Of a stretch of DNA of 64,000 nt, positions 7,031 to 56,726 are shown piece after piece. This DNA is from Haliotis rubra. Taxonomy: Eukaryota. The stretch lies in contig NW_025767079.1 in the NCBI RefSeq assembly GCF_003918875.1, positions 2,852,001 through 2,916,000 of the forward strand, in the 5' to 3' direction. Positions within the stretch are counted from its first letter, which is position 1, and the number at the start of each line of letters is the position of its first letter. The notes under the pieces were generated by a model. It was not told the DNA's origin and did no database searches. It saw nothing but the letters and a program-made list of their open reading frames with translations. The position numbers were made by a program, and so were the translations under genes.

Positions 7031-7250
7031 CTAACCGACAATGTTAGGGTGGGGGTTCTTCGTCGTGTGATGCTGGTTCTGTGCAGCTTGAAGGAGACGC
7101 GGCAGTGTCTGCGTCCATAAGGTGACCCGGTCCTTGTAGGGCTTGGATCCGACGGACATTGTGGTATTCAGCAGTAGATAGTGTTCCCCTGGCTCCGAGA
7201 ACTGAGGCCAAGTCTGGTGCAGGCCATACTGTACAGCGTTGTTGGGATCA
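7031..7250 (-). CDS. Carboxylesterase terminal ('constant') exon C1: 72 aa, DPNNAVQYGLHQTWPQFSEPGEHYLLLNTTMSVGSKPYKDRVTLWTQTLPRLLQAAQNQHHTTKNPHPNIVG*
   Basis: Acceptor tttctactttacAG; 220 nt completes the phase-2 Gly codon of FARYG, giving the FARxGDPN...WPxF...YL...W C-terminus typical of carboxylesterases; not in the ORF track. Confidence 0.9.
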
Positions 7251-7297
7251 CTGTAAAGTAGAAACAGCCCTCAATGATTATCAGGTCACTTAAAATA

Positions 7298-8797
7298 TAC
7301 TAGGCGCTTAAAGAAACTGCATACAAAAATTTAAAATCTAAACTGATCAAACCTGTGTAGACACATAAGGATTTAAACTCAGAGATTAGTGACATGTATC
7401 CAACATGCATGCACGTGCCACGTTCCGTGACGTCAGTGGGTTCGTCCTTGAGACGTGCAATACGTTGTTGCACGTGCATTCCGCGAAAGAAAACAGCAAA
7501 TGAATGCCACACAATACTGTCACTTTGGAAAGCTCAACCCCTGCCCTTGCGATCGTTCAAAAAAATTAAACGGTTATTGAAACGCATAGCATGCCAAGGC
7601 TCACGTCTGCACAACGTCATGAGGCCATTGGGGTGGTCCGTGGGGGAATGTCTCAACGACAAGTGGCTGCACATTTCCACTGCCACCAGAACACCATTTC
7701 TGCACTGGTGAGACGCTACCAGAATGCAAATGACGTCATCGATCGGCCACGTTCTGGACGTCCACGTGTAACAACGCCAAGACAGGCAGGATAAGGGTGA
7801 CCTATCTTCGCCACAGGTTTCAGACTGCAGTGATGACTGCCCGAATCATCCCAGGACTTCGCCGTATCCACCCCAACACAGTTTGACAACGTTTACGTCA
7901 TCACGGGATCAGACCACGACGTCCCGCCATACGGCCTATCCTGACACAACGTCATCGACAAGCTCGCCGACTGTGGTGCCGAAATCATGCCCGCAGACCC
8001 TTGTTTTGGTGGAGAAATGTTGTTTTTTACAGATGAGTCCAGGTTTAACATTTCCCATAGTGATGGACGTCAACGTGCCTATAGACGCGTGGGAGAACGT
8101 TATGCACAGGCCTGTGTCTTGGAGAGGAATCGCTTTGGTGGTGGTTCCGTGATGATTTGGGGTGGAATAACAGCATGCCAAAGAACTCCTTTGGTGATTG
8201 TTCAGGGCAACTTAACTGGTGTGGGCTACAGGGATCAGATTCTTCGACCTGTGGCAATTCCTTTTCTGCAACGTCATGGCCCTGGGTTAACATTCCAACA
8301 GGACAATGCCCGCCCTCATACGGCAAGGGTTGCTATGGATTACTTGCAACACCACAACGTTGACTTACTGCCTTGGCCTGCAAATTCACCGGATCTCTCC
8401 CCGATAGAGTATGTTTGGGACGAGATGGATCGACGTCTACGCCGTCTTCCTCATCCGCCAGATAACGTCCTTGACCTTGCAACACAACTCGAGAGAATCT
8501 GGCGTGACATCCCACAAGCCTTCCTTGCACGTTTGATAGGCTCTATGCGTCGTCGATGCACTGCTGTTCTCAATGCCGATGGTGGACATACCCGTTATTG
8601 AGCTTGTGACATGGTCGTTTGACCCCTGTCCCGCTTGTGGACTCGTCATTGTGATTGACTTTTCAATTGAAATTCTCCCAAATTGTTATGGTCTCATGAT
8701 CCCTCCATTAAAGTTTATATGTACCTTTGACATTGTTATCGTACATATCAACTGGGATAATATTTTGACAATGCACAGTTTCTTTATGTGGCTAGTA
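7298..8797 (+). mobile_element. Tc1/mariner DNA transposon (1.5 kb) in the esterase intron
   Basis: 22-bp TIRs (19/22 identical); TA TSD at 7296-7297 and 8798-8799; empty site taaaaTAgttcac in the paralog at 18681. Confidence 0.95.
7591..8601 (+). pseudogene. Tc1 DD34E transposase, frameshifted
   Basis: HTH N-terminus with GRPR; FTDESRF, QQDNARPH, SPDLSPIE with 34 residues between D and E; split across frames. Confidence 0.9.
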
Positions 8798-8904
8798 TAG
8801 TTCACACCATTCAGGTGAGCTACATAATGACACAAGAGCCTGAAGTAATAATTTCAAAAGTGAAACAAAATATGTAACTTTGATCATTGGAACATTGCTT
8901 GGTT

Positions 8905-11588: not shown

Positions 11589-11653
11589 CGTGTTGGATTC
11601 AGGAACGACCACACTTTCGGGTTATTTTATGTGCCAGTCACTTTCTGTGATTG

Positions 11654-22340: not shown

Positions 22341-23399
22341 CCATAAATCTGTTTTGTGCAAGGAAATTGGCACGTGACACCTACGTTTTCGGACACTTCG
22401 GACACTTTCGATTTTCACTTCATCAAGTTCGTCTTTTGGTGCAAAAGTTGTGACAATTTACCTGCTCGTTTCACAGCCATTTTGCTTCCGAAAATTGAGC
22501 AAAAAAGAGTTATACCTACACTCATATTGCAAGGTGTTCCGTTAGGTGGTGGTATATTCTTATTTGACAGTATTTTATGATAACGCGTTCCTCAATCCCA
22601 AATAGGGGCTGTGGGTGGCCTAACAGTTACAAACAAAGACCAAGAACCCAATTTCTTTGTAGTTCCAGGTGTTGTGTGTACTACCCAGGCGGAAACTGAA
22701 ACAGTTTCCCGTGGAAGAAGGCTAACATTAATGGGAAAGTGATCATATCAGAAGCGATACGATCGCAGACAAAGTTGAGTTATAGGACTTTGAATGTGTT
22801 CTAAAACAAATGTATTTCTCTAACGTTTTTCTTTACTTTTAAGCATCGGAATCTCTGTACGTCTACACAGTAGTCGTAAATCCAAATTATCTAACTGGAT
22901 TTCCCGTTTGATCGATCACTTGATTGTTTGGTTTGTTTATAGACCACTTTCACATGGCAGAAGAACTGGTGAGCATTGTCAGACAAAAAATACTTTCATT
23001 TTGGAAAAAATATTGCGAATGGCCGGCGCTACTGGATGGACAGGAAATGCTTACCCTTTTTGCGAACACCTGGTGTCATTACTGATCTGAAGTGAACCAA
23101 TTATATAGTTTTCACAGCAATTTTCCCTTTATTCCAACAATATTCAAAGGTAATAAAGTCTGGGTATTCTTCTGTACTGGCGTTATATATTCAATTTAAG
23201 CTGCTTGGACTGTCATTCATCCCAGGTCTTGATTCTCTTTCAAAAGGACCAATTCTTACTCCACTCTGGTGTAAACAGGCAGGAACACTATAGGGTGGGG
23301 CAGTCTAACAAACAACACATTTGCACACTCTCATTCTACCATTTTGACACAATCAACGCATTCCCATTTTTCCTTATAAAGAATATTTAGCGAACATAC

Positions 23400-24505
23400 C
23401 CCTGTCTTGCAAAATCTGTCAGCAGTCCCATCAATGTATGTGCCAGGTTCTTTTCGGATTGGTCTGTATCTGTTGTACCGTTGGGGAACGCCTTTGCCAT
23501 AGCAGAGAGGTAGTCTTTGTTGAGACCAAACGTATACATGAGGTCTTCGCCATGATCCAGCCCCTTGCCATGACCAATGATAAAGGATAGGGCGTGGTCA
23601 AACACATACATGTAGGTCTTCTTCCCTGTTTTCAAGCTGCTGCTCAGCTTTGCATGTGCCTTCGCAAAGAGTGTCGCTGGGGCAATCATTCCAGCATCAC
23701 CAAGAGTGTTCATTACTGCCTGAAGATTAATGCTATGGCTTTGAGAGGGGGCATACACCTTCACCACGGCCTGTGTCATGTCAGAAGAAGATGCTCCAAA
23801 ATAAACCTGCAGAAGCTCTGGAATGAAGGTGTTAATGTAGAATGTCTTGTTCTGAACCGATGAGGGAAATGACGTGTGGAACTGTTTATCAGCTGCTTTG
23901 GTCATGTTTTTAAAGATTTCTCCTTCATTGCCCACCATCGACACCATGCAGTCCAGATTTTGAAGTCCTACCTGCTTCAGGTAAGTTTGGGAGTTCTCGG
24001 ATCGTCTTTGACAAACACTCCATCAATAGTTGGTACAAAAAAGAACTCAACTAATGCTGTGACGGGTTCATTGCCAATTGGCCATGATGCTGCAGTCAAC
24101 TTCTTGGCAGACACGGTCCTCAGACAGGCGATCATGGATGCGGAATCGCCCTGGGAGGAAAAGTTCACTTTATGATCCAGTTGTCTCGCGTATTTCAGAG
24201 AGTTCCTGTATATGCTCATGAAGACGATACAGACCCGCTCTGCATGACTGTCCTCTGGTCCTGCTGATTCTCCCATAAGGGTAATACTCTTGATGTCCCC
24301 GCCAAAAGATGCAATGGGTTTTTTAATCCATTGCAGAGCAAGATGCTGGTCCCAGATGCCATAGTTTCTCGCTGACACATCGTCCTCTGTGCTGAGGAAC
24401 CCAAGCGGCCCAAGCAATATTGGATGGTCACAACTATGACCTGTACATGGGCAACGATCAGTGAAGATAGCATCCCCTGCGTCGAATCCCTCTCCATGAA
24501 CCAGA
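23400..24505 (-). pseudogene. First exon V5, 5'-truncated and frameshifted
   Basis: Deletions after GESAG and after DDP; fused at WxHGG to the next fragment. Confidence 0.88.
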
Positions 24506-24791
24506 GTTTATTAGAACCAGTGGATCGTCTTTGACAAATACCCCATCAACGTTAGGTACAAATTAGAACTTGGCTAATGCTGTGACGGGTTCATTTCCCA
24601 TTGGCCATGATGCTGCAGTCAACTTCTTCGCAGACACGGTCCTCAGACAGGCGATCATGGATGCGGAATCGCTCTGGGAGGAACAGTTTACTTTATGAGC
24701 CAGTTGTCGTGCATATTTCAGAGAGTTCCTTGTGTGAGCCCATGAGGACGAGGCAGACCCGCTCTGCATGACTATCCTCTTGAACTAACCC
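24506..24791 (-). pseudogene. Internal first-exon fragment V6
   Basis: MQSGSASSSW...DPLVL segment between a fusion junction and the satellite. Confidence 0.85.
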
Positions 24792-25052
24792 AATTGTCGA
24801 TAATCTGATGTTGCAGTCGTTGCACAGCTGCCGATAATCTCATGGTGCAGTCGTTGCACAGCTGCCGGTAATCTGAAGCTGCTGTCGTTGCACAGCTGAC
24901 CGTAATCTGAAGCTGCAGTCATTGTACAGCTGACCGTAATCTGAAGCTGCAGTCGTTGCACAACTGCCGATAATCTCATGTTGCAGTCGTTGACAACTGC
25001 CAATTATCTGAAGCTGCAGTCGTTGCACAGCTGCCGATTATCTGATGTTGCG
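24792..25052. repeat. 34-bp minisatellite, ~7-8 units
   Basis: Direct tandem repeats. Confidence 0.95.
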
Positions 25053-26187
25053 GCTTCTTCACAGTGTGATGGGAAAGGCATGTCGGCGGAACTGCGTAGG
25101 GATTTTCTAAGAATGCATCGCAGAATGTTCCAGACACTTTGTGCAATTCGAGTTCATTTTAGAATGCCCGGGCATCGAGGTAGCCCAATGGTGAAAGCGT
25201 TTGCTTATTGGCCGAAGACCAGGGATTTTTTCCATTCTTGGGTTCATAGTGCTTTTTTTCTGATGTCCCCTTTCAGAGCCGCGTAAAACCATATTCACTC
25301 ACTTTCAGAATGTAGAATGATCAAGTCGGGTTCACAAACAAAGGCTCTTGATAGAAGCTAATTTTGGTTCGAATCAAAGCCTAACGGTTCCTGGAATCTG
25401 AGTCAGAGAATACTGCGATGTATTAGGACAGCTGCCAACCGCATTAAGCAAATCAGTCCCTAATCAGGGAGTATTTATGAGCTGTTTATTTTAAACGGCA
25501 ACTTAATTTTGCACAATTTTTGAAAGGACGTGTTCAGTAGATATCACCATTGATCCGAACTAACATATTTAACAACTATCGTGAACATAAGTGCACAGAT
25601 CGACACAACGCAACTCATGGATCAAATATTTTTAAACGGATATCAAACTTGATCGAGCAGCCTTGCGAAGCGTACGTAAAATACTGTTATAGGTTTTGGG
25701 AACATTTCATGGGTGTCTTTCATTATTCACCCCAAATTCAGATGGTTTGGTCTGTTGTGTGACGCCACACTCAGTAATATTCCAGTAATATGGTTTCAGT
25801 CTGTAAAAATCGATCGGTCGAGCCAGACAACCCAGTGATCAACAGCAATGGCATTGATCTACCCAACTGGGAAACAATGACATGTGTCAACCAATTCAGC
25901 GAGCCTGACCTCCCGGTCCCGTTAGTCACCTCTTACGACTAGCGTGGGTTGCTGAAGACCAGGGCCTAGATTTTCGAAGCTCTCTTAGCGCTAAGATAGT
26001 CGTAAGTGCCATATCTTAACATTAACCGACTAAAACTAAATTCAACGCCGATGAGATCAGATATATGAACTGTTTACAATGATATCTGCTCCTGACGGCT
26101 TTACATTTGTAACTCATTTACACATTTAAATACCAATGAAATCCACTTTTTAATTCGAAAAGTCAACATCTTGCAGTCGTTGCATGG

Positions 26188-26407
26188 CTAACCGACAATG
26201 TTAGGGTTGGGGTCCTTCGTCGTGTGATGCTGGTTCTGTGCAGCTTGAAGGAGACGCGGCAGTGTCTGCGTCCATAAGGTGACCCGGTCCTTGTAGGGCT
26301 TGGATCCGACGGACATTGTGGTATTCAGCAGTAGATAGTGTTCCCCTGGCTCCGAGAACTGAGGCCAAGTCTGGTGCAGGCCATACTGTACAGCGTTGTT
26401 GGGATCA
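26188..26407 (-). CDS. Carboxylesterase terminal exon C3 (intact)
   Basis: 220 nt; AG acceptor and TAG intact. Confidence 0.85.
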
Positions 26408-28029
26408 CTGTAATGTAGAAACAGCCCTCAATGATTATCAGGTCACTTAAAATACTTCACAACATTGAGGTGAGCTACATAACCTTTGCGTTATGTCACT
26501 TTTAATGACACAAGAGCCTGAAGTAAAATCTCAAAAGTGAAACAAAATATGTAACTTTGATCATTGGAACATTGCTTGGTCGCAACTAGTCAAGGATAAG
26601 GTAAGTACATATGACCAAATGCAGTTGGTCAATGTACTGCAGCCAAGTTATTTATCAATAAGATCAGGACGAGAACATAGACTATGGATACTCGCTTTGG
26701 AACGACCTCAGAACTTCATTGACATTGCGAGAATTACACGGCTAGGTGCAACTCCAATAGAATCAAAGGAATGTCTATGCGGAACAGTTGCTCACGACAT
26801 TATGAAACATGTTTTATGTCCTGCAAGTATAACCTAGTAGAAAGGGATTTCCCTGTTTGAAAGAATCTGTGACATCCTTGACAAAGACATTTTTGTTAAA
26901 ATGTGATTGAAGACGATGATCTATTCCTCCTTGGAGGGTTACCTGACCACTGTAAAGATGTATTAGTTGTAACATTTGGTCAGAACTGGTGGTAATCATT
27001 AGTTCCTCAGTTCGCAGATGGGAGAGCATTCTCCGGCAATGTTCATAAATACCTACAGATCTTTCACAATGGAACATCACTGTATAATTCAAGTACTAAT
27101 AATTTCCTGTACTGTTGTTTATCATATAAATGTTATATTCATTTTATGGAGGAAATAAAGAATATCTATCTATTTCCCATTTGTCAAATGAATCTTGGCT
27201 TTAACCAAATGAGCTTGAAATACAAACTATAACAGTGCAATGACTGTCTGCTGGGGATAGGTGCCTCACTCTGGAAGTCTGGGTTCAAATCCTGGATCGA
27301 ACTCAACCTGACAAAACTATTAAAATCTGTACTCTAGTCAGAAAGTGTAATCCCAAATCCCACTCATATGGGAAAACAATCCAATAGAAATACATTGTGT
27401 GTTGCGGAAAGTTTAACGTATTCTGTAAGTGTAATAAGTTTACTATAAACATGTATTTCAATGTGCCCATCCATTGCTGACTCACAACACATTTGCACTC
27501 TCATCCTACCTTACTGACAGAATCAAACCAACAAAGCTCACCGCATTCCATACAATTTTTTATGAAGCTTATTTGGCGAACATACCCATGATGTCTTTCA
27601 GCAGTCACAAGCAATCAAACGATTGCTTTTTCTCATTCGACCCGTGAAGATCCGGGTTAGAATAGATCTTCAACAACCCATGGTTGCCACAAAAGGCGAC
27701 TATGCTTGTCGTAAGAGGCGACTAACGGGATCGGGTGGTCAGGCTCGCTGACTTGGTTGACACATGTCATCGGTTCCCAATTGCGCAGATCGATGCTCAT
27801 GCTGTTGATCACTGGATTGTCTGGTCCAGACGTGATTATTTACAGACCGACGCCACATAGCTGGAATACTGCTGAGTATCGGTGTAAAACTAAACTCACT
27901 CACTCACTTTCTCCCATTCTCACACACTCAAACTAAACTCGTCCGTCGTACTTCTTACAACCATTCTTGTTAAACTCGTCCGTCGTAATTCTTACAACCA
28001 TTCTTGTTAAAACGTTTTACCAACCATAC

Positions 28030-28962
28030 ACATATCTTGCAAAATCTCTCAGCAGCCCCATCAATGTTTGTGAGAGCTTCCTTTCCGACTCATCTGGATC
28101 TGTTGAACTGATGGGGAAAACCTTTGCGAAATCACCCAAGATGGCTTCGCTGAGACCAAAAGTGTAATAGAGGTCTTTGCCATGATCCATCCCCTTGCCA
28201 TGACCGCTCATAAAGGATGGGACGTGGTCAAACACATACATGTAGGTCTTCTTCCCTGTTTTCAAGCTGCTGCTCAGCATTGAATGAGCCCTGGCAAAGA
28301 GCGTCCCTGGGGCAACCATTCCAGCATCACCAAGAGTGTTCATTCCTGCCTGAAGAGTAACGCTATGGCTTTGAGAGAGGGGGCATACACCTTAGCCACG
28401 GCCTGTGTCATGAAGAGGATGCTCCGAAATAAACCTGAAGAACCTCTAGGATGAAGATATTCCTGTAGAATGTCTTGTTCTGAACTGATGAGGATAATGA
28501 GGAGTGGAACAGATAATCAGCTGCATTGCTTACCACCGACGCCATGCAGTCCAGATTTTGGATACCTGCTTTAGATAACCTAGGGAGCTCATTAGTAACA
28601 ACGTGTCGTCTTTGACAAATATCCCATCAATAGTAGGTACAAAGTAGAACTCGACTAATGCTGTGACGGGTTCATTTCCCATTGGCCATGATGCTGCAGT
28701 CAACTTCTTGGCAGACACGATCCTCAGACAGGCGATCATGGATGCGGAATCGCTCTGGGAGGAACAGTTTACTTTTTGAGCCAGTTGTCTTGCATATTTA
28801 AGAGAGTTCCTTGTATAAGCCCATGAGGACGAGGCAGACCCGCTCTGCATGATTGTCCTCTGAAACAAACCCTTGGACGATGGGTTGAGCATTGAGGTAT
28901 TGCAAGGTAAACAACAAGGTGAAGACACCGATGAGAACCATTGTGTTTTGAAGAACGACCAT
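28030..28962 (-). pseudogene. First exon V7 with a large internal deletion
   Basis: Jumps from the signal peptide (NAQPI) to KGLFQR, losing GESAG; further frameshifts. Confidence 0.88.
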
Positions 28963-29851
28963 AGTCTTGAAGCTTTATTGCATATTTAATGTAACAGTCA
29001 CGTGTGTTGTGCAATCGCAATGGTAGTATAAATGGCTTTCATACAACATACCCTAGTTAACTCCTCTTTATCTGAAATGAAAAATCGGCCAGCGGCTTTG
29101 ATGCCTGTTTATGTTATTTTCTTCACTTTAACTGCAAAGGCCCTGTCCGCTCGTCCCGAGAACTAATTAGACTAGACACTGATTAGCTGATGAAGCACTT
29201 CGAACAAAACCCAGGAGAGGCACAACAGGAACAGCTGCTTGCTAACAATTCTGACCATATGATCGCCTGAACAAGATTCGATTATTTTCACTCTATAAAC
29301 ATCCAGATAATATTATCGCAAAGTGCGACATTAAACAAAAAACAACCAAAATGATCTTCGTTCTTAGCCCCGTTCCACGAGGCTGTCTTAGCGTCATGAC
29401 TGTTGTAAATCTTTGTTAAAACATGGACGTCATGGTCATCTTAACACTTGTTTTTCACTTTGTGAAACATAATTTTTGTGCCCAGTTCCATTCTAAGCCC
29501 TAATACTATAAGTATTACCTAGGGGGAAATGGAGACTTTTCTCAAGGAATAGGCCATACACCTGACTGCGAATTGATCATATCAAAAGAAGTGTGGTTTG
29601 CGTGACTTCATTCTGAGTTAATGGAGTTTTTTATTTGTCCAGGGCCCGTGAACCCTTAAAAGGGGACCAATGTTTCTTAGTAATTTCTGGTCCATAGTTG
29701 ATTATGAACAGGCTGGAATGCTGCCGAACGGAGCATCACACAACAGTCTTACAAACAAAATATTTACTCACTCTCTTTGTAACACATTAAATCTCAAATA
29801 GTTCACCACATTCCCGCGATTTTTCTTCCAAACAATATTTGAGATACCTAC

Positions 29852-32639: not shown

Positions 32640-32859
32640 CTAACCGACAATGTTAGGGTTGGGGTCCTTCGTCGTGTGATGCTGGTTCTGTGCAGCTTGA
32701 AGGAGACGCGGCAGTGTCTGCGTCCATAAGGTGACCCGGTCCTTGTAGGGCTTGGATCCGACGGACATTGTGGTATTCAGCAGTAGATAGTGTTCCCCTG
32801 GCTCCGAGAACTGAGGCCAAGTCTGGTGCAGGCCATACTGTACAGCGTTGTTGGGATCA
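32640..32859 (-). CDS. Carboxylesterase terminal exon C4 (intact); probable partner of V11
   Basis: 220 nt; AG acceptor and TAG intact. Confidence 0.87.
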
Positions 32860-34483
32860 CTGTAATGTAGAAACAGCCCTCAATGATTATCAGGTCACTT
32901 AAAATACTTCACAACATTGAGGTGAGCTACATAACCTTTGCGTTATGTCACTTTTAATGACACAAGAGCCTGAAGTAAAAATCTCAAAAGTGAAACAAAA
33001 TATGTAACTTTGATCATTGGAACATTGCTTGGTCGCAACTAGTCAAGGATAAGGTAAGTACATATGACCAAATGCAGTTGGTCAATGTACTGCAGCCAAG
33101 GTTATTTATCAATAAGATCAGGACGAGAACATAGACTATGGATACTCGCTTTGGAACGACCTCAGAACTTCATTGACATTGCGAGAATTACACGGCTAGG
33201 TGCAACTCCAATAGAATCAAAGGAATGTCTATGCGGAACAGTTGCTCACGACATTATGAAACATGTTTTTATGTCCTGCAAGTATAACCTAGTAGAAAGG
33301 GATTTCCCTGTTTGAAAGAATCTGTGACATCCTTGACAAAGACATTTTTGTTAAAATGTGATTGAAGACGATGATCTATTCCTCCTTGGAGGGTTACCTG
33401 ACCACTGTAAAGATGTATTAGTTGTAACATTTGGTCAGAACTGGTGGTAATCATTAGTTCCTCAGTTCGCAGATGGGAGAGCATTCTCCGGCAATGTTCA
33501 TAAATACCTACAGATCTTTCACAATGGAACATCACTGTATAATTCAAGTACTAATAATTTCCTGTACTGTTGTTTATCATATAAATGTTATATTCATTTT
33601 ATGGAGGAAATAAAGAATATCTATCTATTTCCCATTTGTCAAATGAATCTTGGCTTTAACCAAATGAGCTTGAAATACAAACTATAACAGTGCAATGACT
33701 GTCTGCTGGGGATAGGTGCCTCACTCTGGAAGTCTGGGTTCAAATCCTGGATCGAACTCAACCTGACAAAACTATTAAAATCTGTACTCTAGTCAGAAAG
33801 TGTAATCCCAAATCCCACTCATATGGGAAAACAATCCAATAGAAATACATTGTGTGTTGCGGAAAGTTTAACGTATTCTGTAAGTGTAATAAGTTTACTA
33901 TAAACATGTATTTCAATGTGCCCATCCATTGCTGACTCACAACACATTTGCACTCTCATCCTACCTTACTGACAGAATCAAACCAACAAAGCTCACCGCA
34001 TTCCATACAATTTTTTATGAAGCTTATTTGGCGAACATACCCATGATGTCTTTCAGCAGTCACAAGCAATCAAACGATTGCTTTTTCTCATTCGACCCGT
34101 GAAGATCCGGGTTAGAATAGATCTTCAACAACCCATGGTTGCCACAAAAGGCGACTATGCTTGTCGTAAGAGGCGACTAACGGGATCGGGTGGTCAGGCT
34201 CGCTGACTTGGTTGACACATGTCATCGGTTCCCAATTGCGCAGATCGATGCTCATGCTGTTGATCACTGGATTGTCTGGTCCAGACGTGATTATTTACAG
34301 ACCGACGCCACATAGCTGGAATACTGCTGAGTATCGGTGTAAAACTAACTCACTCACTCACTTTCTCCCATTCTCACACACTCAAACTAAACTCGTCCGT
34401 CGTACTTCTTACAACCATTCTTGTTAAACTCGTCCGTCGTAATTCTTACAACCATTCTTGTTAAAACGTTTTACCAACCATAC

Positions 34484-35414
34484 ACATATCTTGCAAAATC
34501 TCTCAGCAGCCCCATCAATGTTTGTGAGAGCTTCCTTTCCGACTCATCTGGATCTGTTGAACTGATGGGGAAAACCTTTGCGAAATCACCCAAGATGGCT
34601 TCGCTGAGACCAAAAGTGTAATAGAGGTCTTTGCCATGATCCATCCCCTTGCCATGACCGCTCATAAAGGATGGGACGTGGTCAAACACATACATGTAGG
34701 TCTTCTTCCCTGTTTTCAAGCTGCTGCTCAGCATTGAATGAGCCCTGGCAAAGAGCGTCCCTGGGGCAACCATTCCAGCATCACCAAGAGTGTTCATTCC
34801 TGCCTGAAGAGTAACGCTATGGCTTTGAGAGGGGGCATACACCTTAGCCACGGCCTGTGTCATGAAGAGGATGCTCCGAAATAAACCTGAAGAACCTCTA
34901 GGATGAAGATATTCCTGTAGAATGTCTTGTTCTGAACTGATGAGGATAATGAGGAGTGGAACAGATAATCAGCTGCATTGCTTACCACCGACGCCATGCA
35001 GTCCAGATTTTGGATACCTGCTTTAGATAACCTAGGGAGCTCATTAGTAACAACGTGTCGTCTTTGACAAATATCCCATCAATAGTAGGTACAAAGTAGA
35101 ACTCGACTAATGCTGTGACGGGTTCATTTCCCATTGGCCATGATGCTGCAGTCAACTTCTTGGCAGACACGATCCTCAGACAGGCGATCATGGATGCGGA
35201 ATCGCTCTGGGAGGAACAGTTTACTTTTTGAGCCAGTTGTCTTGCATATTTAAGAGAGTTCCTTGTATAAGCCCATGAGGACGAGGCAGACCCGCTCTGC
35301 ATGATTGTCCTCTGAAACAAACCCTTGGACGATGGGTTGAGCATTGAGGTATTGCAAGGTAAACAACAAGGTGAAGACACCGATGAGAACCATTGTGTTT
35401 TGAAGAACGACCAT
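34484..35414 (-). pseudogene. First exon V10 with an internal deletion (copy of V7)
   Basis: Same deletion as V7. Confidence 0.88.
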
Positions 35415-36305
35415 AGTCTTGAAGCTTTATTGCATATTTAATGTAACAGTCACGTGTGTTGTGCAATCGCAATGGTAGTATAAATAGCTTTCATACAACA
35501 TACCCTAGTTAACTCCTCTTTATCTGAAATGAAAAATCGGCCAGACGCTTTGATGCCTGTTTATGTTATTTTCTTCACTTTAACTGCAAAGGCCCTGTCC
35601 GCTCGTCCCGAGAACTAATTAGACTAGACACTGATTAGCTGATGAAGCACTTCGAACAAAACCCAGGAGAGGCACAACAGGAACAGCTGCTTGCTAACAA
35701 TTCTGACCATATGATCGCCTGAACAAGATTCGATTATTTTCACTCTATAAACATCCAGATAATATTATCGCAAAGTGCGACATTAAACAAAAAAACAACC
35801 AAAATGATCTTCGTTCTTAGCCCCGTTCCACGAGGCTGTCTTAGCGTCATGACTGTTGTAAATCTTTGTTAAAACATGGACGTCATGGTCATCTTAACAC
35901 TTGTTTTTCACTTTGTGAAACATAATTTTTGTGCCCAGTTCCATTCTAAGCCCTAATACTATAAGTATTACCTAGGGGGAAATGGAGACTTTTCTCAAAG
36001 GAATAGGCCATACACCTGACTGCGAATTGATCATATCAAAAGAAGTGTGGTTTGCGTGACTTCATTCTGAGTTAATGGAGTTTTTTATTTGTCCAGGGCC
36101 CGTGAACCCTTAAAAGGGGACCAATGTTTCTTAGTAATTTCTGGTCCATAGTTGATTATGAACAGGCTGGAATGCTGCCGAACGGAGCATCACACAACAG
36201 TCTTACAAACAAAATATTTACTCACTCTCTTTGTAACACATTAAATCTCAAATAGTTCACCACATTCCCGCGATTTTTCTTCCAAACAATATTTGAGATA
36301 CCTAC

Positions 36306-37843
36306 CCATGTCTTGTGAAATCTGTGAGCAGTCCCATCACCGTATGCGCAATGTCCTTGTCGGATTGGTCTGGATCAGTTATATTGTATGAGTACGCTTT
36401 TGCCATAGCGACCACGTTTTGGTTGAGACCAAAAGTGTAATAGACGTCATCACCATGATCCACCCCCTTGCCATGACCAATGATAAAGGATGGGATGTGG
36501 TCAAACACATACATGTAGGTCTTCTTCCCTGTTTTCAAACTGCTGGTCAGCTTTGAATGAGCCCTCGCAAAGAGTGTCGCGGGGACAACCATTCCAGCAT
36601 CACCAAGAGTGTTCATTACTGCCTGAAGAGCTACCGCATGGCTTTGAGAGGGGGCATACACCTTCGCCACGGCCTGTGACATGTCAGAAGAAGATGTTCC
36701 AAAATAAACCTGAAGAAGTTCTGTCATGAAGGTGTTAATGTAGAATGTCTTGTTCTGAACCGATGAGGGAAATGACGTGTGGAACTGATTATCAGCTGCT
36801 TTTGCCATGTTTTTAAATATTCCTCCTTCATTGCTCACCACGGACACCATGCAGTCCAGATTTTGAAGTTCTACCTGCTTCAGGTAAGTTTGGGAGTTAA
36901 TTAGAACCAGTGGATCGTCTTTGACAAATACCCCATCAACAGTAGGTACAAAGTAGAACTCGACTAATGCTGTGACGGGTTCATTTCCCATTGGCCATGA
37001 TGCTGCAGTCAACCTCTTGGCAGACACGGTCTTCAGACAGGCGATCATGGATGCGGAATCGCTCTGGGAGGAACAGTTTACTTTTTGAGCCAGTTGTCGT
37101 GCATATTTCAGAGAGTTCCTTGTATATGCCCACGAGGACGAGGCAGATCCGCTCTGCATGATTGTCCTCTGAAACAAACCCTTGGACCCTGAGTACAAGG
37201 CCTGGAATGCCACACTAGCGGATCCTGCTGATTCTCCCATGAGGGTGATGCTGTTCATGTCCCCGCCAAAAGATGCAATGTTTTTCTTAACCCATTGCAG
37301 AGCAAGATGTTGGTCCCAGAGGCCGTAGTTTCCCGCTGACACATCGTCCTTTGTGCTGAGGAACCCAAGTGGCCCCAAGCGATATTGGATGGTTACCACT
37401 ATGACCTGTTCGTTGGCTACGATCAGTGAAGGGTCATAAGTGATAGCAGCCCCTGCGATGAATCCCCCTCCATGTATCCAGACAATTACAGGTATGTTAC
37501 TGGTGTCCGTAATTGAGGCTGGAGTGAAAACATTCAGTGTTAAGCAATCCTCGTTCCCAGTAACACTATTACTGCCAATCAAGTTGAAGGCCTGAAGGCA
37601 TGCTGGACCATACTTGTAAGCTTTGAAGGTATGGTTAAACCCAGGATGTGGCTGTGGTCGCTTGAACCGTCTACTCCCAGTAGGCGGTACAGCGAAGGGG
37701 ATTCCTAAGAATGCATGATAAGGTGTCCAGTCTTCTGTGACGTTTGTGGTCCCCTCAACTACACCCCACGGGGCGTCGATGACAGGCAGGGCGTTAAGGT
37801 GTTGCAGGGTTAACAGCAAAGTAAAGACCCCAATGAGAACCAT
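36306..37843 (-). CDS. Carboxylesterase first exon V11 (intact)
   Basis: ATG at 37843, signal peptide, GESAG, SNEG, VDHGDDV; donor GG|GTAGGT at 36306, phase 2. Confidence 0.9.
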
Positions 37844-38512
37844 TGTGTTGGTTTCAGGAACGACCACACTCTCGGGGTATTTTATGTGCCAGTTACTCGC
37901 TGTGTTTGTATAAATAGCGGAAGATAACGTCAACCTTATCTCCATTGTAACGTGTACTAGACAGATTGGACAATTCACATGTTCACAAATTGGGTTGGGA
38001 TTAAAGTCTCTCTGATTGCAGTTTATGTACATTTTCCCCAACTGAGAATTGGAAAGTATTTGCTCGCTCGTACCGAGAACAAATAACCGTCAACGTTGAT
38101 TGCTTGATCAGGCTGTTCATCTGATGGGACCTCCTTACCTACGGAGGTCTCATCCTATCATGTTGAAGGAAGGTAGGGAATTGAAGGCATTTCACGTGAA
38201 ATAGGCTTTATACCTGACTGCGAATAGATCATATTAAAAGAGATCGGGGTAACAGGACTTCATTTTGAGCTGCTTGGAGTTTTTAATTTGTCCGGGGCCA
38301 GTCAACCCTTCAAAGAGGACCAATGCTTCTTAGTAATTTCTGGTCCATAGTTGATTATGAACAGACAGTAATACTGACGAATGGTGCATCACACAACAGT
38401 CTTACAAACATTATATTTACTCACTCTCCTTGTAACATATCAACACATTCAAGCTCAAACAGTTCACCGCATTCCCGAGATTTTTCTTCTAAACAATATT
38501 TGAGATACCTAC

Positions 38513-44296: not shown

Positions 44297-45494
44297 ACTC
44301 TTAAAGTTTTAAAGCTTATTATTTTATGTAACAGTCACGTGTGTTGTTCAATCGCAATGGTAGTATAAATAGCTTTCAAGATACAAGATACCCTAGTTAA
44401 CTCCTCTTTATCTGCAATGAAAAATCGGCCAGACAATTTCAACATTTGTGCATAAATGATAGCTTGGATTCAAACCACTTCGATGCCTGTTTATGTTATT
44501 TTCTTCACTCGAACTGCAAAGGCTATGCCCACTCGTCCCGAGAACTTATTAGAATCAACGCTGATTAGCTGATGAAGCACTTCGGACAAAACCCAGGAGA
44601 GGCACAACAGGAACAACTGCTTGCTAACAATTCTGACCACATGATCGCCTGAACAAGATTCGATTATTTTCACTCTATAAACATCCAGATAGTATTATCG
44701 CAAAGTGCGACATTAAACAAAAACAACCAAAATGTTCTTCGTTCTTAGCCCCGTTCCACAAGACCGCCTTAGCATCATGATTGTTCGACTCTGTTGTGAA
44801 TATTTGTTAAAACATAGACGTCATGGTCATCTTGACACTTCTTTTTGACTTTGTGAAACATGATTTATGTGCCCAGTTCCATTCTAAGCCTCAATACTAT
44901 AAGTATTACCTAGGGGGAAATTTAGACATTTCTCATGGAATAGGCCTCACGCCTGACTGCGAATTGATCATGTTAAAAGAAGTATGGTTTGCATGACTTC
45001 ATTCTGAGTTGCTCGGACTGTCATTTGTCTAGAGCCAATCCACCCTTCAAAGAGGACCAGTGCTTCTTAGTAACTTCTTGTCCATAGTTGATTATGAACA
45101 GACTGGACTTCTGCCGAATGGTGCATAACACAACAATCTTACAAGTGAGGTTTGCATGACTTCATTCATTCTTAGTTGCTTGGATTTTTTAATTTGTCAA
45201 GAGCCAGTTCAGCCTTCAAAGAGGACCAATGCTTCTTCGTAATTCCTCATCCATAGTTGATTATGAACAGGCTGGAATACTGCCGAATGGTGCATCTCAC
45301 AACAGTCTTACAAACAAAATATTTGCTCACTCTCTTTGTAACATATTAACACATTCAAGCTCAAATAATTCACCGCGTTCCAGAGATTGTTCTTGTAAAC
45401 AATATTTGACACACCTACATATTAACACATTCAAGCTCAAATAATTCACCGCGTTCCAGAGATTGTTCTTGTAAACAATATTTGACACACCTAC

Positions 45495-47035: not shown

Positions 47036-47704
47036 GGTGTTTGTTTAAGGAACGACCACACTCTCGGGTTATTTTATGTGCCAGTCACTCGCTCTGATTG
47101 TATAAATAGCTGAAGATAACCTCAACTTTATCTCCATTGTAACATGTACTAGACAGATTGGACAATTCACATGTTCACAAATTGAGTTGGGATTAAATTC
47201 TCTCTGATGGCAGTTTATGTACATTTTCCCAAACTGAGAATTGGAAAGGATTTTCTCGCTCGTACCGAGAACAAATAAACCTCAACGTTGATTGCTTGAT
47301 CAGGCTGTTCATCTGAGGGGACCTCCTTACCTACGGAGGTCTCATCCTATCATGTTGAAGAAAGGTAGGGAATTGAAGGCATTTCACGTGAAATAGGCTT
47401 TATACCTGACTGCGAATAGATCATATTAAAAGAGATCGGGGTTACAGGACTTCATTTTGAGCTGCTTGGAGTTTTTAATTTGTCCGGGGCCAGTCAACCC
47501 TTCAAAGAGGACCAATGCTTCTTAGTAATTTCTGGTCCATAGTTGATTATGAACAGACAGTAATACTGACGAATGGTGCATCACACAACAGTCTTACAAA
47601 CATTATATTTACTCACTCTCCTTGTAACATATCAACACATTCAAGCTCAAACAGTTCACCGCATTCCCGAGATTTTTCTTCTAAACAATATTTGAGATAC
47701 CTAC

Positions 47705-49269
47705 CCATGTCTTGCAAAATCTGTCAGCAGTCACATCATCATATGTGCAAGCTTCTTTTCGGATTGGTCTGGATCTGTTATTGTGTTGGGGAACGCCTTT
47801 GTCATAGCAGCGAGGTAGGCTTTGCTGAGACCAAACGTGTACATGAGGTCTTCACCATGATCCATCCCCTTGCCATGACCAATGATAAAGGATGGGATGT
47901 GGTCAAACACATACATGTAGGTCTTCTTCCCCGTTTTGGAGCTGCTGGTCAGCTTTGAATGAGCCCTGGCAAAGAGTGTCGCTGGTGCAACCATTCCAAC
48001 ATCACCAAGAGTGTTCATTCCTGCCTGAAGAGTAACAGTATGACTTTGAGAGGGGGCATACACCTTAGCCACGGCCTGTGTCATGTCAGAAGAGGATGTT
48101 CCGAAATATAGCTGTAGAATCGCTGGGATGAAGATGTTTCTGTAGAATCGATTGTTCTCAACTGATGAGGATAATGAGGAGTGGAACTGTTTATCAGCTG
48201 CTTTTGTAACTATTTGAATCAGTCCACCTTCATTGCTTACCACCGACACCATGCAGTCCAGATTTTGAAGTCCTACCTGCTTTAAATAACCTGGGGAGTT
48301 CATTAGCTTTAGCGGATCGTCCTTGACAAACACCCCATCAATAGTTGGTATAAAATAGAACTGGAATAATGCTGTGACGGGTTCATTTCCCATTGGCCAT
48401 GATGCTGCAACCAACTTCTTGGCAGGAATACTCCTCAGACAGGTGAGCATTGATGCCGGGTCGCTCTGGGAGAAACAGTTAAGCTTATGAGCCAGTTGTC
48501 GAGCATATTTCAGAGGGTTCCTTGTGTGAGCCCATGAGAACGAGGCAGACCCGCTCTGCATGATTATCCTCTGAAACAAATCCTTGGACCCTGTGTACAA
48601 AGCCTGGAATGCCACACTAGCGGATCCTGCTGATTCTCCCATGAGGGTAATGCTGTTGATGTCCCCGCCAAAAGATGCAATATTCTTCTTAACCCATTGC
48701 AGAGCAAGATGTTGGTCCCAGAGGCCATAGTTTCCGGCTGACACTTTGTCCTTTGTGCTGAGGAACCCGAGCGGCCCCAAACGATATTGGATGGTCACCA
48801 CTATTACCTGACCATGGGCAACGATCGATGAAGGATCAAAGGTGAAAGCATCCCCACCAATGAATCCCCCTCCATGTATCCAGACAATTACAGGTATGTT
48901 ACTGGTTTCCGCAATTGAGGCTGGTGTGAATACATTCAGTGTTAATCAATCCTCCTTTCCAGTGACACCATATCCAACAGTCGTCTTGAGAGTTTGGGGG
49001 CATGCTGGACCATAACTGTTGGCTTTGAAGGTGTAGTTAAACCCAGGATGTGGTTGTGGTCGCTTGAACCGTTTGCTCCCTGTAGGTGGAACTGCAAAAG
49101 GGATTCCTAAAAATGCATGATAAGGTGTCCAGTCCTCGGTGACGTTCGTGGTCCCCTCAACTATACCCCAAGGGGTGTCGATGATGGGTTGAGCGTTGAG
49201 TTATTGCAAGGTAAACAACAAGGTGAAGACACCGATGAGAACCATTGTGTTGTTTTGAAGAACGAACAT
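47705..49269 (-). pseudogene. Full-length but disabled first exon V15
   Basis: Same signal-peptide TAA as V13, TGA replacing the Cys of EDCL, and a stop near the 3' end. Confidence 0.88.
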
Positions 49270-51295: not shown

Positions 51296-51582
51296 AGTTA
51301 ATTAGAACCAGTGGATCGTCTTTGACCAACACCCCATCAATAGTAGGTACAAAATAGAACTAGGCTAATGCTGTGACGGGTTCATTTCCCATTGGCCATG
51401 AGGCTGCAGTCAACCTCTTGGCAGACACGGTCCTCAGACAGGCGATCATGGATGCGGAATCGCTCTGGGAGGAACAGTTTACTTTATGAGCCAGTTGTCT
51501 TGCATATTTCAGAGAGTTCCTTGTGTGAGCCCACGAGGAAGAGGCAGACCCACTCTGCATGACTATCCTCTGGAACAAACCC
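51296..51582 (-). pseudogene. Internal first-exon fragment V17
   Basis: GLFQR...DPLVL segment abutting the satellite. Confidence 0.85.
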
Positions 51583-51943
51583 AATTACGGATAATCTCAT
51601 GGTGCTGTCGTTGCACAGCGGCCGGTAATCTGAAATTGCAGTCGTTGCACAGCTGCCGGTAATCTGAAGCTGCAGTCGTTGCACAACTGCCGATAATCTG
51701 AAGCTGCAGTCGTTGCACAGCTGCCGGTAATCTGAAGCTGCCGTCGTTGCACAACTGCCGGTAATCTGAAGCTGCAGTCGTTGCACAGCTGCCGATAATC
51801 TCATGTTGCAGTCGTTGACAACTGCCAATTATCTGAAGCTGCAGTCGTTGCACAGCTGCCGATAATCTCATGTTGCAGTCGTTTACAAGTACCCATTATC
51901 TGAAGCTGCAGTCGTTGCATAGCTGCCGATAATCTGATGTTGC
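51583..51943. repeat. 34-bp minisatellite, ~10-11 units
   Basis: Direct tandem repeats. Confidence 0.95.
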
Positions 51944-52053: not shown

Positions 52054-52210
52054 NNNNNNNNNNNNNNNNNNNNNNNNNNNNNNNNNNNNNNNNNNNNNNN
52101 NNNNNNNNNNNNNNNNNNNNNNNNNNNNNNNNNNNNNNNNNNNNNNNNNNNNNNNNNNNNNNNNNNNNNNNNNNNNNNNNNNNNNNNNNNNNNNNNNNNN
52201 NNNNNNNNNN
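52054..52210. other. Assembly gap (N run)
   Basis: 157 Ns; the flanks match paralogous sequence around 17313-17520. Confidence 0.99.
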
Positions 52211-53093: not shown

Positions 53094-53313
53094 CTAACCG
53101 ACAATGTTAGGGTGGGGGTTCTTTGTCGTGTGATGCTGGTTCTGTGCAGCTTGAAGGAGACGCGGCAGTGTCTGCGTCCATAGGGTGACCCGGTCCTTGT
53201 AGGGCTTGGATCCGACGGACATTGTGGTATTCAGCAGTAGATAGTGTTCCCCTGGCTCCGAGAACTGAGGCCAACTCTGCTGCAGGCCATACTGCACAGC
53301 GTTGTTTGGATCA
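53094..53313 (-). CDS. Carboxylesterase terminal exon C6 (intact)
   Basis: 220 nt; acceptor catttcAG; ORF track 53094-53297. Confidence 0.87.
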
Positions 53314-54906
53314 CTGAAATGTAGGAACAGCCCTCAATAATTATCAACTCACCTAAAATATTTCACAACATTGAGGTGAGCTACATAACCTTTGCGTTAT
53401 GTCACTTTTAATGACACAAGAGCCTGAAGTAAAAATTTCAAAAGTGAAACAAAATATGTAATTTTGATCATTAGGAACATTGCTTGGTCGCAACTAGTCA
53501 AGCATAAGGTAAGTACATATGGCCAAATGCAGTTGGTCAATGTACTGCAGCCAACGTTATCTATCAATAAGATCAGGACGAGAACATAGACTATGGATAC
53601 TCGCTTTGGAACGACCTCAGAACTTCACTGACATTGCGAGAATTATACCGCTAGGTGCAACTCCAATAGAATCAAAGGAATGTCTATGCGAAACAGTTGC
53701 TCACGACATTATGAAACATGTTTTTATGTCATGCAAGTATAACCTAGTAGAAAGGGATTCCCTATTTCAAAGAATCTGTGACATCCTTGACAAAGACATT
53801 TTGCTAAAATGTGGATGGAAGACGATGACGTATTCCTGTCATTCCTCCTTGGAGGTATACCTGACCCCTGTAGAGATGGACTAGTATTGGATTGTAACAC
53901 CTGGTCAGAACTGATCGTAATCATTACTTCCTCAGTTGGATGAGCATACTCCGGCAATGTTCATAAATACCTACAGATCTTTCACAATGGAACATTACTG
54001 TATAATTCAAGTACTAATAGACAATTTTCTGTACTGTTGTTTATCAGATAAATGTAATCTTCATTTTATGGAGGAAATAAAAAATATCTATCTATTTGCT
54101 ATTTGTCAAATTAATCTTGGCTTTAACCAAATGAGCTTGAAATACAAACTATAATAGTGCAATGAATGTCTGCTGGGGATAGGTGCCTCACTCTGGGAGT
54201 CTGGGTTCAAATCGCGGATGGGACTCAACCTGACAAAACTATTAAAATCTGTACTTTAGTCAGAAAGTGTAATCCCAAATCCCAATCATATGGGAAAACA
54301 AGGCAATAGAAATACATTGTGTGTTGCGGAAAGTTTAGCGTATTCTGTAAGTGTAAGAAGTTTACTATATACATGTATTTCAATGTGCCCATCCCTTGCT
54401 GACTAACAACACATTTGCACTCTCATCCTACCTTACTGACAGAATCATACCAACAAAGCTCACCGCATTCCATACACATTTTTATGAAGATTATTTGGCG
54501 AACATACCCATGATGTCTTTCAGCAGTTCGAAACAATCAAACGATGGCTTTCTCCCATTCGACCCGTGAAGATCCGGGGTAGAATAGGTCTTCAACAACC
54601 CATGCTTGCCACAAAAGGCGACTATGCCTGTCGTAAGAGGCGACTAACGGGATCGGGTGGTCAGGCTCGCTGACTTGGTTGACACATGTCATCGGTTCCC
54701 AATTGCGCAGATCGATGCTCATGCTGTTGATCACTGGATTGTCTGGCCCAGACTCGATTATTTACAGACCGACGCCATATAGCTGGAATACTGCTGAGTC
54801 TAAACTTACTCACTCGGTCACTTTCTCCCATTCTGACACACTCAAACTAAACTCGTCCGTCCTAATTTTTACAACCATTCTTGTTAAAACGTTTTACCAA
54901 CCATAC

Positions 54907-56424
54907 CCATATCTTGCAAAATCTGTCAGCAGCCCAATCAATGTTTGTGAGAGCTTCCTTTCCGATTCATCTGGATCTGTTGAACTGATGGGGAAAACCT
55001 TTGCAAAAGCACCCAAGATGGCTTTGCTGAGACCAAAAGAGTAATAGAGGTCTTCGCCATGATCTATCCCCTTGCCATGACCGCTCATAAAGGATGGGAT
55101 GTGGTCAAACACATACATGTGTTTTCAAGCTGCTGGTGAGATTTGAATGCGCCCTCGCAGAGAGCGTCCCTGGGACAACCATTCCAGCATCACCAAGAGT
55201 GTTCATTACTGCCTGAAGAGTAACAGTATGGCTTTGAGAGGGGGCATACACCTTAGCCACGGCCTGTGTCATGTCAGAAGAGCATGCTCCGAAATAAACC
55301 TGAAGAACCTCTGGGATGAAGATGTTCCTGTAGAATGTCTTGTTCTTAACTGATGAGGATAATGAAGATTGGAACAGATAATCAGCTGCTTTTGAAAGTC
55401 TCTTGAAGAGCTCACCTTTTTTGCTTACCACCGACACCATGCAGTCCAGATCTTGGATACCTGCTTTAGATAACCTGGGGAGCTCATTAGTAACAACGGG
55501 TAGTTTTTGACAAATATCCCATCAATAGTAGGTACAGAATAGAACTCGGCTAATGCTGTGACGGGTTCATTTCCCATTGGCCATGAGGCTGCAGCCAACC
55601 TCTTGGCAGACACGGTCCTCAGACAGGCGATCATGGATGCGGAATCGCTCTGGGAGGAACAGTTTACTTTATGACCCAGTTGTCGTGCATATTTCAGTGG
55701 GTTCCTTGTGTGAGCCAATGAGGACGAAACAGACACACTCTGCATGATTGTCCTTTGAAACAAATCCTTGGGACCATGAGTACAAGGCCTGGAATGCCAC
55801 ACTAGCGGATCCTGCTGATTGTCCCATGAGGGTAATGATGTCCCCGCCAAAAGATGCAATGTTTTTCTTGACCCATTGCAGAGCAAGATGCTGGTCCCAG
55901 AGGCCATAGTTTCCCGCTGACACGTGGTCCTCTGTGCTGAGGAACCCAAGCGGTCCCAAGCCGTATTGGATGGTGACGACTATGACATGTCTATGGGCAA
56001 CTATCGATGAAGGGTCATAGGAGAAAGCATCTCCTGAAACGAATCCCCCCTCCATGTATCCAGACAATTACAGGTATGTTACTGGTTTCAGTAATTGAGG
56101 CTGGAGTGAATACATTCAGTGTTAAGCAATCCTCGTCCCCAGTGGCACCATATCCACCAAACGCCATGAGAGTTTGGACGCAAGCTGGACCATAACTGTT
56201 GGCTTTAAAGATGTGATTAAACCCAGGATGTGGCTGTGGTCGCTTGAACCGCCTGCCCCCAGTAGGCGGTACTGCGAAGGAGATTCCCAAAAAGCATGAT
56301 AAGGTGTCCAGTCCTCGGTGACGTTCGTGGTCCCCTCAACTATACCCCAAGGGGTGTCGACGATGGGTTGAGCGTTGAGGTATTGCAAGGTAAACAACAA
56401 GGTGAAGACACCGATGAGAACCAT
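54907..56424 (-). pseudogene. Full-length first exon V18 with multiple frameshifts
   Basis: Esterase motifs spread over five ORFs in different frames. Confidence 0.9.
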
Positions 56425-56726
56425 TGTGTTATTTTTTAAGAACGACCATACTCTTGAAGCTTAAAAGCTTATTTTATGTAACAGTCACGTGTGTTGTTCA
56501 ATCGCAATGGTAGTATAAATAGCTTTCAAGACACAAGATACCCCAGTTAACTCCTCTTTATCTACAATGAAAAATCGGCCAGACACTTTCAACATTTGTG
56601 CATAAATGATAGCTTGGATTCAAGCCACTTCGATGCCTGTTTATGTTATTTTCTTGACTCGAACTTCAAAGGCTATGCCCGCTCGTCCCGAGAACTTATT
56701 AGAATCAACGCTGATTAGCTGATGAT

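Follow-up and report, generated by a model that had tools for sequence, protein, structure and literature searches.

Tandem variable first exons with constant exons in common, as in UGT1A, UGT2A, GCNT2 and the clustered protocadherins, are textbook features of vertebrate genomes. The constant exons of UGT1A encode the entire cofactor-binding half of the enzyme, and the variable exon of GCNT2 encodes most of the enzyme. The PF00135 family of carboxylesterases also forms tandem clusters, for example those of mammalian CES1/CES2 and the insect alpha-esterases, which contain many pseudogenes, have presumed roles in detoxification or digestion, and are made up of copies each of which is a complete gene. 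The organisation of Ugt1, Gcnt2 and Ugt2a has been described as vertebrate-specific; clusters of the UGT1A type show species-specific exon duplications, pseudo-exons within the array and birth-and-death evolution, and UGT2A has exactly two variable exons (Li & Wu 2007, PMC1885805). Here we describe a stretch of 64,000 nt from the blacklip abalone Haliotis rubra (scaffold QXJH01000004.1:2,852,001-2,916,000, hereafter the window), the minus strand of which carries an array of carboxylesterase first exons (V) and a smaller number of terminal exons (C). An earlier note on this DNA had likened the array to UGT1A and the protocadherins and had stated that no description of such an esterase locus was known to its author; a full-text search of the literature likewise found no description of a shared-terminal-exon arrangement for esterases, abalone or invertebrates.

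We conclude, with a probability of roughly 0.7, that secreted type-B carboxylesterase genes form at this locus a tandem cluster evolving by birth and death, in which V exons distant from a C exon would be spliced across their neighbours to a shared C exon.

The carboxylesterase genes have two coding exons

The window lies on a 7.4-Mb scaffold, and its long minus-strand open reading frames encode type-B carboxylesterases. Each gene has two coding exons, and all coordinates given below for V and C exons refer to the minus strand. The first exon (V, 1541 nt) contains, in order, the ATG, a signal peptide, the HGGGF and GESAG motifs and the catalytic His, and ends in ...FARxG; every copy that retains its 3' end has a phase-2 donor there, either GG/GTAGGT or GG/GTATGT (the slash marks the exon boundary). 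The terminal exon (C, 220 nt) follows a cag/TGATCC acceptor and contributes the last 72 codons (DPNN...WPQF...YLLL...LW...) and the stop; an ATTAAA hexamer is found 34 nt past the exon. When donor and acceptor are joined in phase, ...FARxG-DPNN... is restored, as the earlier note had proposed for both the donor and the completion of the C-terminus. About 88% of the protein, with the complete Ser-Glu-His triad, comes from V, and only the last 72 residues from C.

Against the Pfam profile PF00135 (COesterase), V scored 435.8 bits (cut-off 27, E 3.5e-130) over profile positions 2-472 of 515, and C supplies the rest. The HGGGF, GESAG and DHG motifs lie at positions 132, 211 and 470, respectively, and G133, G134, S213, H471, C90/C108 and C265/C277 are invariant in an alignment of 52 sequences, the Cys pairs corresponding to the two disulfide loops conserved in the family and HGGGF to its oxyanion hole; the catalytic acidic residue was assigned from an NEGG motif in the sequence. 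The C-encoded part contains three near-invariant residues of the family (P524, W536 and W567). In an AlphaFold2 model of V joined to C (mean predicted local distance difference test score 90.7, predicted template modelling score 0.91), this part is confidently folded as a helix followed by a hairpin and a long helix at the terminus. Foldseek comparison with the PDB returned neuroligin, acetylcholinesterase, butyrylcholinesterase and human CES1 (E 1e-42 to 1e-46; target-normalised template modelling score 0.77-0.87 over 563-622 alignment columns). We conclude from sequence and modelled fold that the protein is a type-B carboxylesterase or cholinesterase-like alpha/beta hydrolase, and a predicted esterase.

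First exons outnumber terminal exons

The whole H. rubra cluster extends over about 76 kb, with seven C exons and 21 V copies, eight of the latter being intact. Six C exons and 15 V loci fall within the window; Vb, Vi and Vk are each rearranged into two pieces, which gives the 18 or so pieces counted in the earlier note. In the direction of transcription the units are Va-C6, Vb-Vc-Vd-Ve-C5, Vf-Vg-Vh-C4, Vi-Vj-C3, Vk-Vl-C2 and Vm-Vn-Vo-C1. Seven of the V copies are full-length (Va, Vc, Vd, Ve, Vg, Vn and Vo) and only four are intact (Vo, Vn, Vg and Vd, formerly V1, V2, V11 and V14); Vm is 5'-truncated with an open frame, and the remaining ten carry frameshifts, stops or deletions.

The six C exons are 96-100% identical and all have the acceptor (...ttacag/TGATCC), the open 72-codon frame, the stop and the ATTAAA hexamer at the same distance of 34 nt. 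C1 (7031-7250) is common to RefSeq isoforms X1 and X2 described below, the C-termini of which match it, and C2 (18416-18635) is 100% identical to C1 and belongs to a unit without an intact V. C3 (26188-26407) lies within a 7.4-kb duplicate, 97.8% identical, of the unit that contains C4 (32640-32859). C5 (41190-41409) has its acceptor and open frame like the rest, and C6 (53094-53313) encodes a peptide, GLQQSWPQF, that is unique among the six.

Among the intact V exons, Vo (11588-10048, with its ATG at 11588 and the donor GG/GTATGT) adjoins C1. The other three are distal, that is, separated from the next C by at least one V. Vn (14750-13210), for which RefSeq places the start at an upstream ATG at 14774, would have to skip Vo in order to reach C1; Vg (37843-36306) has the donor GG/GTAGGT and meets a stop immediately on read-through; in Vd (47035-45495) the nucleophile elbow reads GQSAG rather than GESAG, and the Glu so replaced is one that the family alignment shows to be conserved to at least 90%. 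Vm (16599-15720) begins at reference nucleotide 663 and has neither promoter nor ATG. It can be seen that five of the six V exons next to a C in the window carry the same 4-bp frameshift deletion, only Vo being free of it. These are Vl (21168-19965, next to C2, with further frameshifts and stops), Vj (28885-28031, next to C3, internally deleted), Vh (formerly V10; 35337-34485, next to C4, internally deleted), Ve (formerly V13; 44272-42735, next to C5, full-length with two stops) and Va (56424-54906, next to C6, full-length with four more frameshifts). The remaining dead copies are Vk (24791-23399, rearranged), Vi (31241-29851, rearranged), Vf (39385-38512, 5'-truncated), Vc (49245-47704, full-length with three in-frame stops) and Vb (51582-50218, rearranged and 5'-truncated). 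The earlier note was therefore right that V2, V11 and V14 are intact and not adjacent to a C exon, but two of the exons it expected them to skip, V10 and V13, are dead relics rather than live alternatives.

The shared deletion is also found in the C-adjacent V of the unit just upstream of the window, so that six of the seven adjacent V exons of the H. rubra cluster have it, and it implies that a unit whose proximal V had already died was copied, together with the intron and C, at least five times. In a tree of V exons the block duplicates are seen as the pairs (Vd, L5e), (Vg, L5b) and (Vc, L5d) and as a clade of dead proximal copies. The only very recent duplication is that of 23301-30707 and 29744-37171.

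RefSeq models join distal first exons to the next terminal exon

Three of the V to C junctions that the earlier note had proposed are already predicted by RefSeq. XP_046579765 (P0001, isoform X1) is Vn joined to C1 (13210 to 7250), its residues 1-522 being 100% identical to the translation of Vn; XP_046579766 (P0005, isoform X2) is Vo joined to C1 (10048 to 7250; residues 1-514, 100%); and XP_046579689 (P0011) is Vg joined to a C4-type exon (36306 to 32859; residues 1-513, 100%). A further model, XP_046579688 (P0131), joins a V located 2.2-3.8 kb past the right end of the window to C6 (66248, in coordinates continued from the window, to 53313), spanning a BEL/Pao retrotransposon and the dead Va; its last exon is unambiguously C6 because of the unique peptide. 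Models P0007 and P0125 are isoforms X1 and X2 of the unit just upstream of the window, in which three V exons, the last of them dead, precede one C, and P0010 and P0129 also join a distal V to the next C with the intervening V exons skipped. No Vd-C5 junction was found among the proteins retrieved. Two short models are built on relics: the 106-aa P0126 consists of the 3' tail of Vk and a C1/C2-type exon, and the 254-aa P0124 of a 182-codon open frame in Vi and a C3-type exon.

Distal V exons are joined to C likewise in the RefSeq isoforms X1-X3 of Haliotis rufescens. In isoform X3 (XP_048250063; L001 10001-41473) the first V is joined to the third C over 31 kb, with two intact C exons and four V exons skipped; if this junction is real, the choice of C is not strictly that of the next one available.

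The layout recurs in other abalone genomes

The same layout of several V exons followed by one C, hereafter V(n)-C, was looked for in related genomes and found in H. rufescens and Haliotis asinina. In H. rufescens the arrangements are V-V-C, a pair with a live first and a dead second V before C, and a single dead V before C. In H. asinina eight tandem full-length V exons are followed by one C; seven are intact, one has a stop, and all have donors. This array occupies 24 kb of a chromosome-level assembly with no N in the region. Genes with a single V and C are also present, in Haliotis cracherodii, H. asinina and H. rubra. The layout thus recurs in three independently assembled Haliotis genomes, and we conclude that it is genuine and not an artefact of assembly.

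Outside the block duplicates, V exons cluster by species in the tree, and there are no one-to-one V orthologues between species.

Distal first exons and terminal exons are constrained

We found that 15 of the 17 full-length distal V exons of the three species are free of stops, against about four expected neutrally. The expectation comes from random substitutions simulated on each terminal branch, with the probability of remaining stop-free scored for each V; for the 15 intact distal exons these probabilities lie between 0.02 and 0.76 and give a product of about 1e-12. In H. rubra seven distal V exons are intact, whereas the adjacent ones are mostly dead (six of seven).

Constraint on C can be seen when the five units with a dead proximal V are compared. 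Pooled over pairs of units, the dead V and the intron have each diverged by 5.7% and C by 2.0%, so that C diverges about three times more slowly than its flanks, and C has the lowest divergence in 10 of 10 unit pairs; the pairs are not independent, which inflates the Fisher p, but the direction is uniform. As the adjacent V was dead before these units were copied, the constraint on C is best explained by its use from distal V exons.

The ratio of non-synonymous to synonymous substitution rates (dN/dS) of the non-adjacent V exons had been suggested as a check. Calculated pairwise by the Nei-Gojobori method, the ratio is lower for intact pairs of V exons (0.26-0.45) than for dead pairs (about 0.5), but only modestly, and the separation is too weak to serve as a test, probably on account of gene conversion or composition bias; it was replaced by the stop simulation and the divergence comparison above.

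Amino-acid diversity among intact paralogues peaks in the same three segments in all three species, namely residues 89-104 (the Cys-loop), 348-365 (immediately past the catalytic Glu) and 483-501 (beyond the catalytic His), and the dead V copies do not show this pattern. The limits of these segments were set with the data in view. Within them dN is raised 4-7 times over the remainder; H. rubra and H. asinina have a dN/dS of 0.6, and only three H. rufescens pairs have a value above 1. Positive selection was considered as an explanation and set aside, as the data amount to concentrated diversity rather than proven positive selection.

Putative promoter, intron and polyadenylation signals

A TATA-like element, GCTATTTATAC, has 10 matches in the window, where 0.68 would be expected from shuffled sequence. 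All are on the minus strand, 65-98 nt upstream of the ATG of a V exon; one lies at 56513-56523 and the others start at 11653, 14838, 21302, 29026, 35478, 37908, 44363, 47100 and 49336. Such a box precedes every V that has its 5' end, in all three Haliotis species. The assertion that each V with an intact 5' end has its own TATA-like element and ATG therefore holds at the level of a sequence motif, and on this conserved motif each V would have its own, putative, promoter. Just upstream of the box most V promoters of the three species have an inverted pair of GATA-like motifs (for example at 37909-37940, 47101-47132 and 44364-44412), and the pair GATAAR...TATCTT precedes five of the 10 GCTATTTATAC boxes in the window. 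The first GATA-like motif has been lost upstream of Vn and Vo, so that promoter motifs differ between V exons. The pair may represent a module for a GATA factor of the gut or digestive gland, with copy-specific changes.

Polyadenylation would follow C, where the hexamer is conserved across the three Haliotis species. Hexamers are also found 217-302 nt past the donors of Vd, Vg, Vc and Vf, and none was found between Vn and Vo. If a V donor is not used, translation would stop within 0-11 codons in the window, as had been claimed; many V exons end GG/GTAG and so encounter a TAG at once, and the tails produced by read-through differ from copy to copy in both length and sequence.

The start of the intron after donors of the GTAGGT type (GTAGGTATCTCAAATATTGTTTAGAAGAA, about the first 30 nt) is near-identical between V copies of H. 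rubra and H. asinina, the synonymous divergence of the exons being about 0.3. This stretch may be a splicing-regulatory element. RNA pairing of the docking/selector kind known from Dscam, between the intron start after V and the region upstream of C, was also considered and rejected: the longest helices are 9-13 bp, no better than those of shuffled controls (mean about 11 bp, up to 15-18 bp).

Mobile elements, the minisatellite and the assembly gap

The intron between Vo and C1 is about 2.8 kb, longer than the other V-C introns and not alignable to them, because a fragment of a DDE_3 (Tc1/mariner-like) transposase has been inserted in it (7987-8601, plus strand). A BEL/Pao long terminal repeat (LTR) retrotransposon occupies 57517-63964 on the plus strand, with LTRs at 57517-57760 and 63720-63964 that are 97-98% identical and frames that are mostly open (gag-like DUF1759, protease, reverse transcriptase, Peptidase_A17, integrase and DUF5641). 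It lies antisense within the 13-kb intron of model P0131, between the V outside the window and C6, and is apparently a young insertion. A separate reverse-transcriptase fragment is seen at 56785-57630.

A 68-bp minisatellite (51582-51943) has paralogous arrays at about 16.6-17.2, 24.8-25.1, 31.2-31.5 and 39.4-40.0 kb. It is found at each boundary between repeat units, directly upstream of 5'-truncated V copies, and is probably a breakpoint of unequal crossing-over. It is also the likely cause of the single assembly gap in the window (157 N, 52054-52210), which falls within the non-coding spacer that separates the 3' flank of C6 from Vb. An overlapping locus, L009, departs from the window at these 157 positions alone. 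The flanks of the gap are colinear with three paralogous spacers that hold 104-208 bp at this place, and the spacing fits the estimated gap length; because of this colinearity neither a V nor a C is taken to be interrupted, and the gap affects no exon.

Discussion

The evidence can be accommodated by the following scheme. The ancestral gene would have had two exons, V and C. Unequal crossing-over would have duplicated the promoter and V repeatedly without C, and later whole blocks of V exons with their C. Transcription would most probably begin at a V-specific promoter and run through the downstream V exons, live or dead; the donor nearest the cap would join the next C acceptor in phase 2, and polyadenylation would follow C. 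We saw no evidence that V uses an upstream acceptor, and an exon with its own TATA-like promoter and donor but no sign of an acceptor suggests that the transcript of a distal V should run on to the next C. In the window the workable combinations would be Vn and Vo with C1, which two live V exons would share, Vg with C4, Vd with C5 and the V outside the window with C6; the other ten V copies and the units of C2 and C3 are relics. The intronic hexamers after Vd and Vg suggest that these two might also yield some truncated read-through product.

A number of observations weigh against splicing of distal V exons to a shared C or limit the reading given in the earlier note. The splice joins are those of RefSeq predicted models, and these models cannot always be trusted locally: XP_046579526 (P0016, 584 aa; 47734-48945 and 51584-51871, minus strand) has the minisatellite translated as its N-terminus and pieces of dead V stitched together, and is plainly spurious. 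In other cases, namely H. rubra P0002 and P0004 and the distal V exons of H. asinina, RefSeq takes the V for a gene in itself that ends by read-through (513-534 aa). When the 145-aa segment around the V/C junction was searched in a protein collection, three RefSeq proteins were returned and no fragments from Logan run assemblies; a search with the full-length protein gave RefSeq models as its only close matches. The hexamers after Vd and Vg could terminate transcripts early. C2 and C3 are conserved though their units have no intact V, gene conversion could account for the slow divergence of C in place of selection, and dN/dS separates intact from dead pairs weakly. In the window 11 of the 15 V copies are broken or truncated, so that locally it is a birth-and-death patchwork, mostly of relics, and not a variable array of 18 exons, with at most two live V exons for any C. 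Finally, the grouping of V exons by species implies that the arrays expanded separately in each lineage.

The alternative that survives best, although we consider it unlikely, is that the distal V exons are independent single-exon genes, each ending at a read-through stop within 0-20 codons, polyadenylated in the intron and encoding a working truncated esterase, with C serving its adjacent V only. The stand-alone annotation of P0002, P0004 and six of the seven H. asinina distal V exons (as proteins of 513, 514 and 532 aa; the dead one, A6, has no model) agrees with this, as do the immediate TAG in the many exons that end GG/GTAG and the hexamers noted above past the donors of Vd, Vg, Vc and Vf. 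However, a product of V alone would lose the confidently folded helix-hairpin-helix and three near-invariant residues; the read-through tails are not conserved; Vn has no hexamer before Vo; and for both H. rubra and H. rufescens there are RefSeq models in which distal V exons are joined to C. In addition, six of the seven H. rubra C exons stand beside a V that was already dead when it was copied, and yet they have stayed intact, with a divergence one third that of their flanks.

Less probable still, to the point of being improbable, is that only C-adjacent V exons function and that the distal ones are silent, decaying partial duplicates, the pseudogene litter of unequal crossing-over. The many broken copies in the window, the rapid turnover suggested by grouping according to species and a dN/dS of intact pairs only modestly below that of dead pairs would all fit. 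In H. rubra, however, it is the adjacent exons that are dead and the distal ones that are intact; stop-free distal exons are also far more numerous than neutral decay would leave (15 of 17 against about four), and the diversity of intact paralogues is gathered in three loops in a way that is not seen in dead copies. That every V truly has its own C, and that near-identical C segments were collapsed or dropped in assembly, is very improbable: C1 and C2 are identical, some units nearly so (97.8% for the pair noted above), and one gap lies beside the minisatellite, but V-V junctions are continuous and free of N with spacers down to 668 nt, V-V-C and the eight-V, one-C array occur without N in the separate assemblies of H. 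rufescens and H. asinina, and the gap falls in a spacer with flanks colinear to paralogous units.

We therefore favour the cluster with splicing of distal V exons to a shared C, for which the support, though indirect, is strong. Within it, promoter choice, and specialisation of substrate range through the three hypervariable loops, are inferred, as is the splicing itself. We would put at slightly better than even the chances of a fuller proposal, in which up to seven live V exons, as in H. asinina, each with a full catalytic domain and its own TATA-like (and in some cases GATA-like) promoter, would share one C and yield secreted esterases of differing substrate range switched by promoter, as an independent invertebrate counterpart of UGT1A. 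The design that the earlier note had drawn from UGT1A and the protocadherins is thus upheld as regards the layout, the RefSeq joins, the open frames of distal V exons and the constraint on C; it is not upheld as a large live array in the window, where four of the 15 V exons are intact and no C has more than two live ones.

If this is correct, an enzyme family of molluscs has reached the layout independently, and the design would arise readily whenever a module of promoter and first exon is duplicated without the 3' end of the gene. The 24-kb array of H. asinina, with eight V exons and one C, and the repeated V(n)-C units of H. rubra would together make a compact system in which to ask how the donor nearest the cap is chosen, how transcription passes through promoters further downstream, and how a shared exon is conserved when the first exons beside it die. 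There is also a practical consequence, as RefSeq annotates the same structure in contradictory ways, as isoforms in some abalone species and as truncated stand-alone genes in others, so that the number of esterase genes counted in these abalone genomes cannot be relied upon until the contradiction is settled.

Comparison with known systems

The resemblance to UGT1A is considerable. Both have tandem, same-strand, large paralogous first exons, each with a promoter (putative in abalone), an ATG and a donor but no acceptor, and in both a downstream shared exon is joined in phase, in abalone by prediction. Pseudo-exons, lineage-specific duplication and birth-and-death evolution are common to the two, as are an enzyme family of the detoxification type and a concentration of paralogue diversity in a few segments. 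The differences are that the abalone genes belong to another enzyme family and another phylum; that their constant part is very small (72 residues), V holding the whole catalytic triad; that the H. rubra cluster consists of seven tandem repeats of the V(n)-C unit, most of them having 0-2 live V exons; and that in abalone the splicing is predicted and promoter choice putative.

In having two live first exons for one constant region (Vn and Vo on C1, and the L005 pair on C0), the H. rubra units are similar to UGT2A1/UGT2A2 and GCNT2, although the vertebrate exons are orthologous across mammals whereas the abalone V exons group by species. The alpha and gamma protocadherin clusters likewise have variable first exons with their own promoters, spliced in cis to constant exons, and arrays expanded lineage by lineage; they encode neuronal adhesion receptors, however, with stochastic promoter choice through CTCF and enhancer looping, and nothing of this kind is implied for abalone. 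Compared with ordinary carboxylesterase clusters, finally, most of the abalone duplicates have no terminal exon of their own and would have to borrow one.

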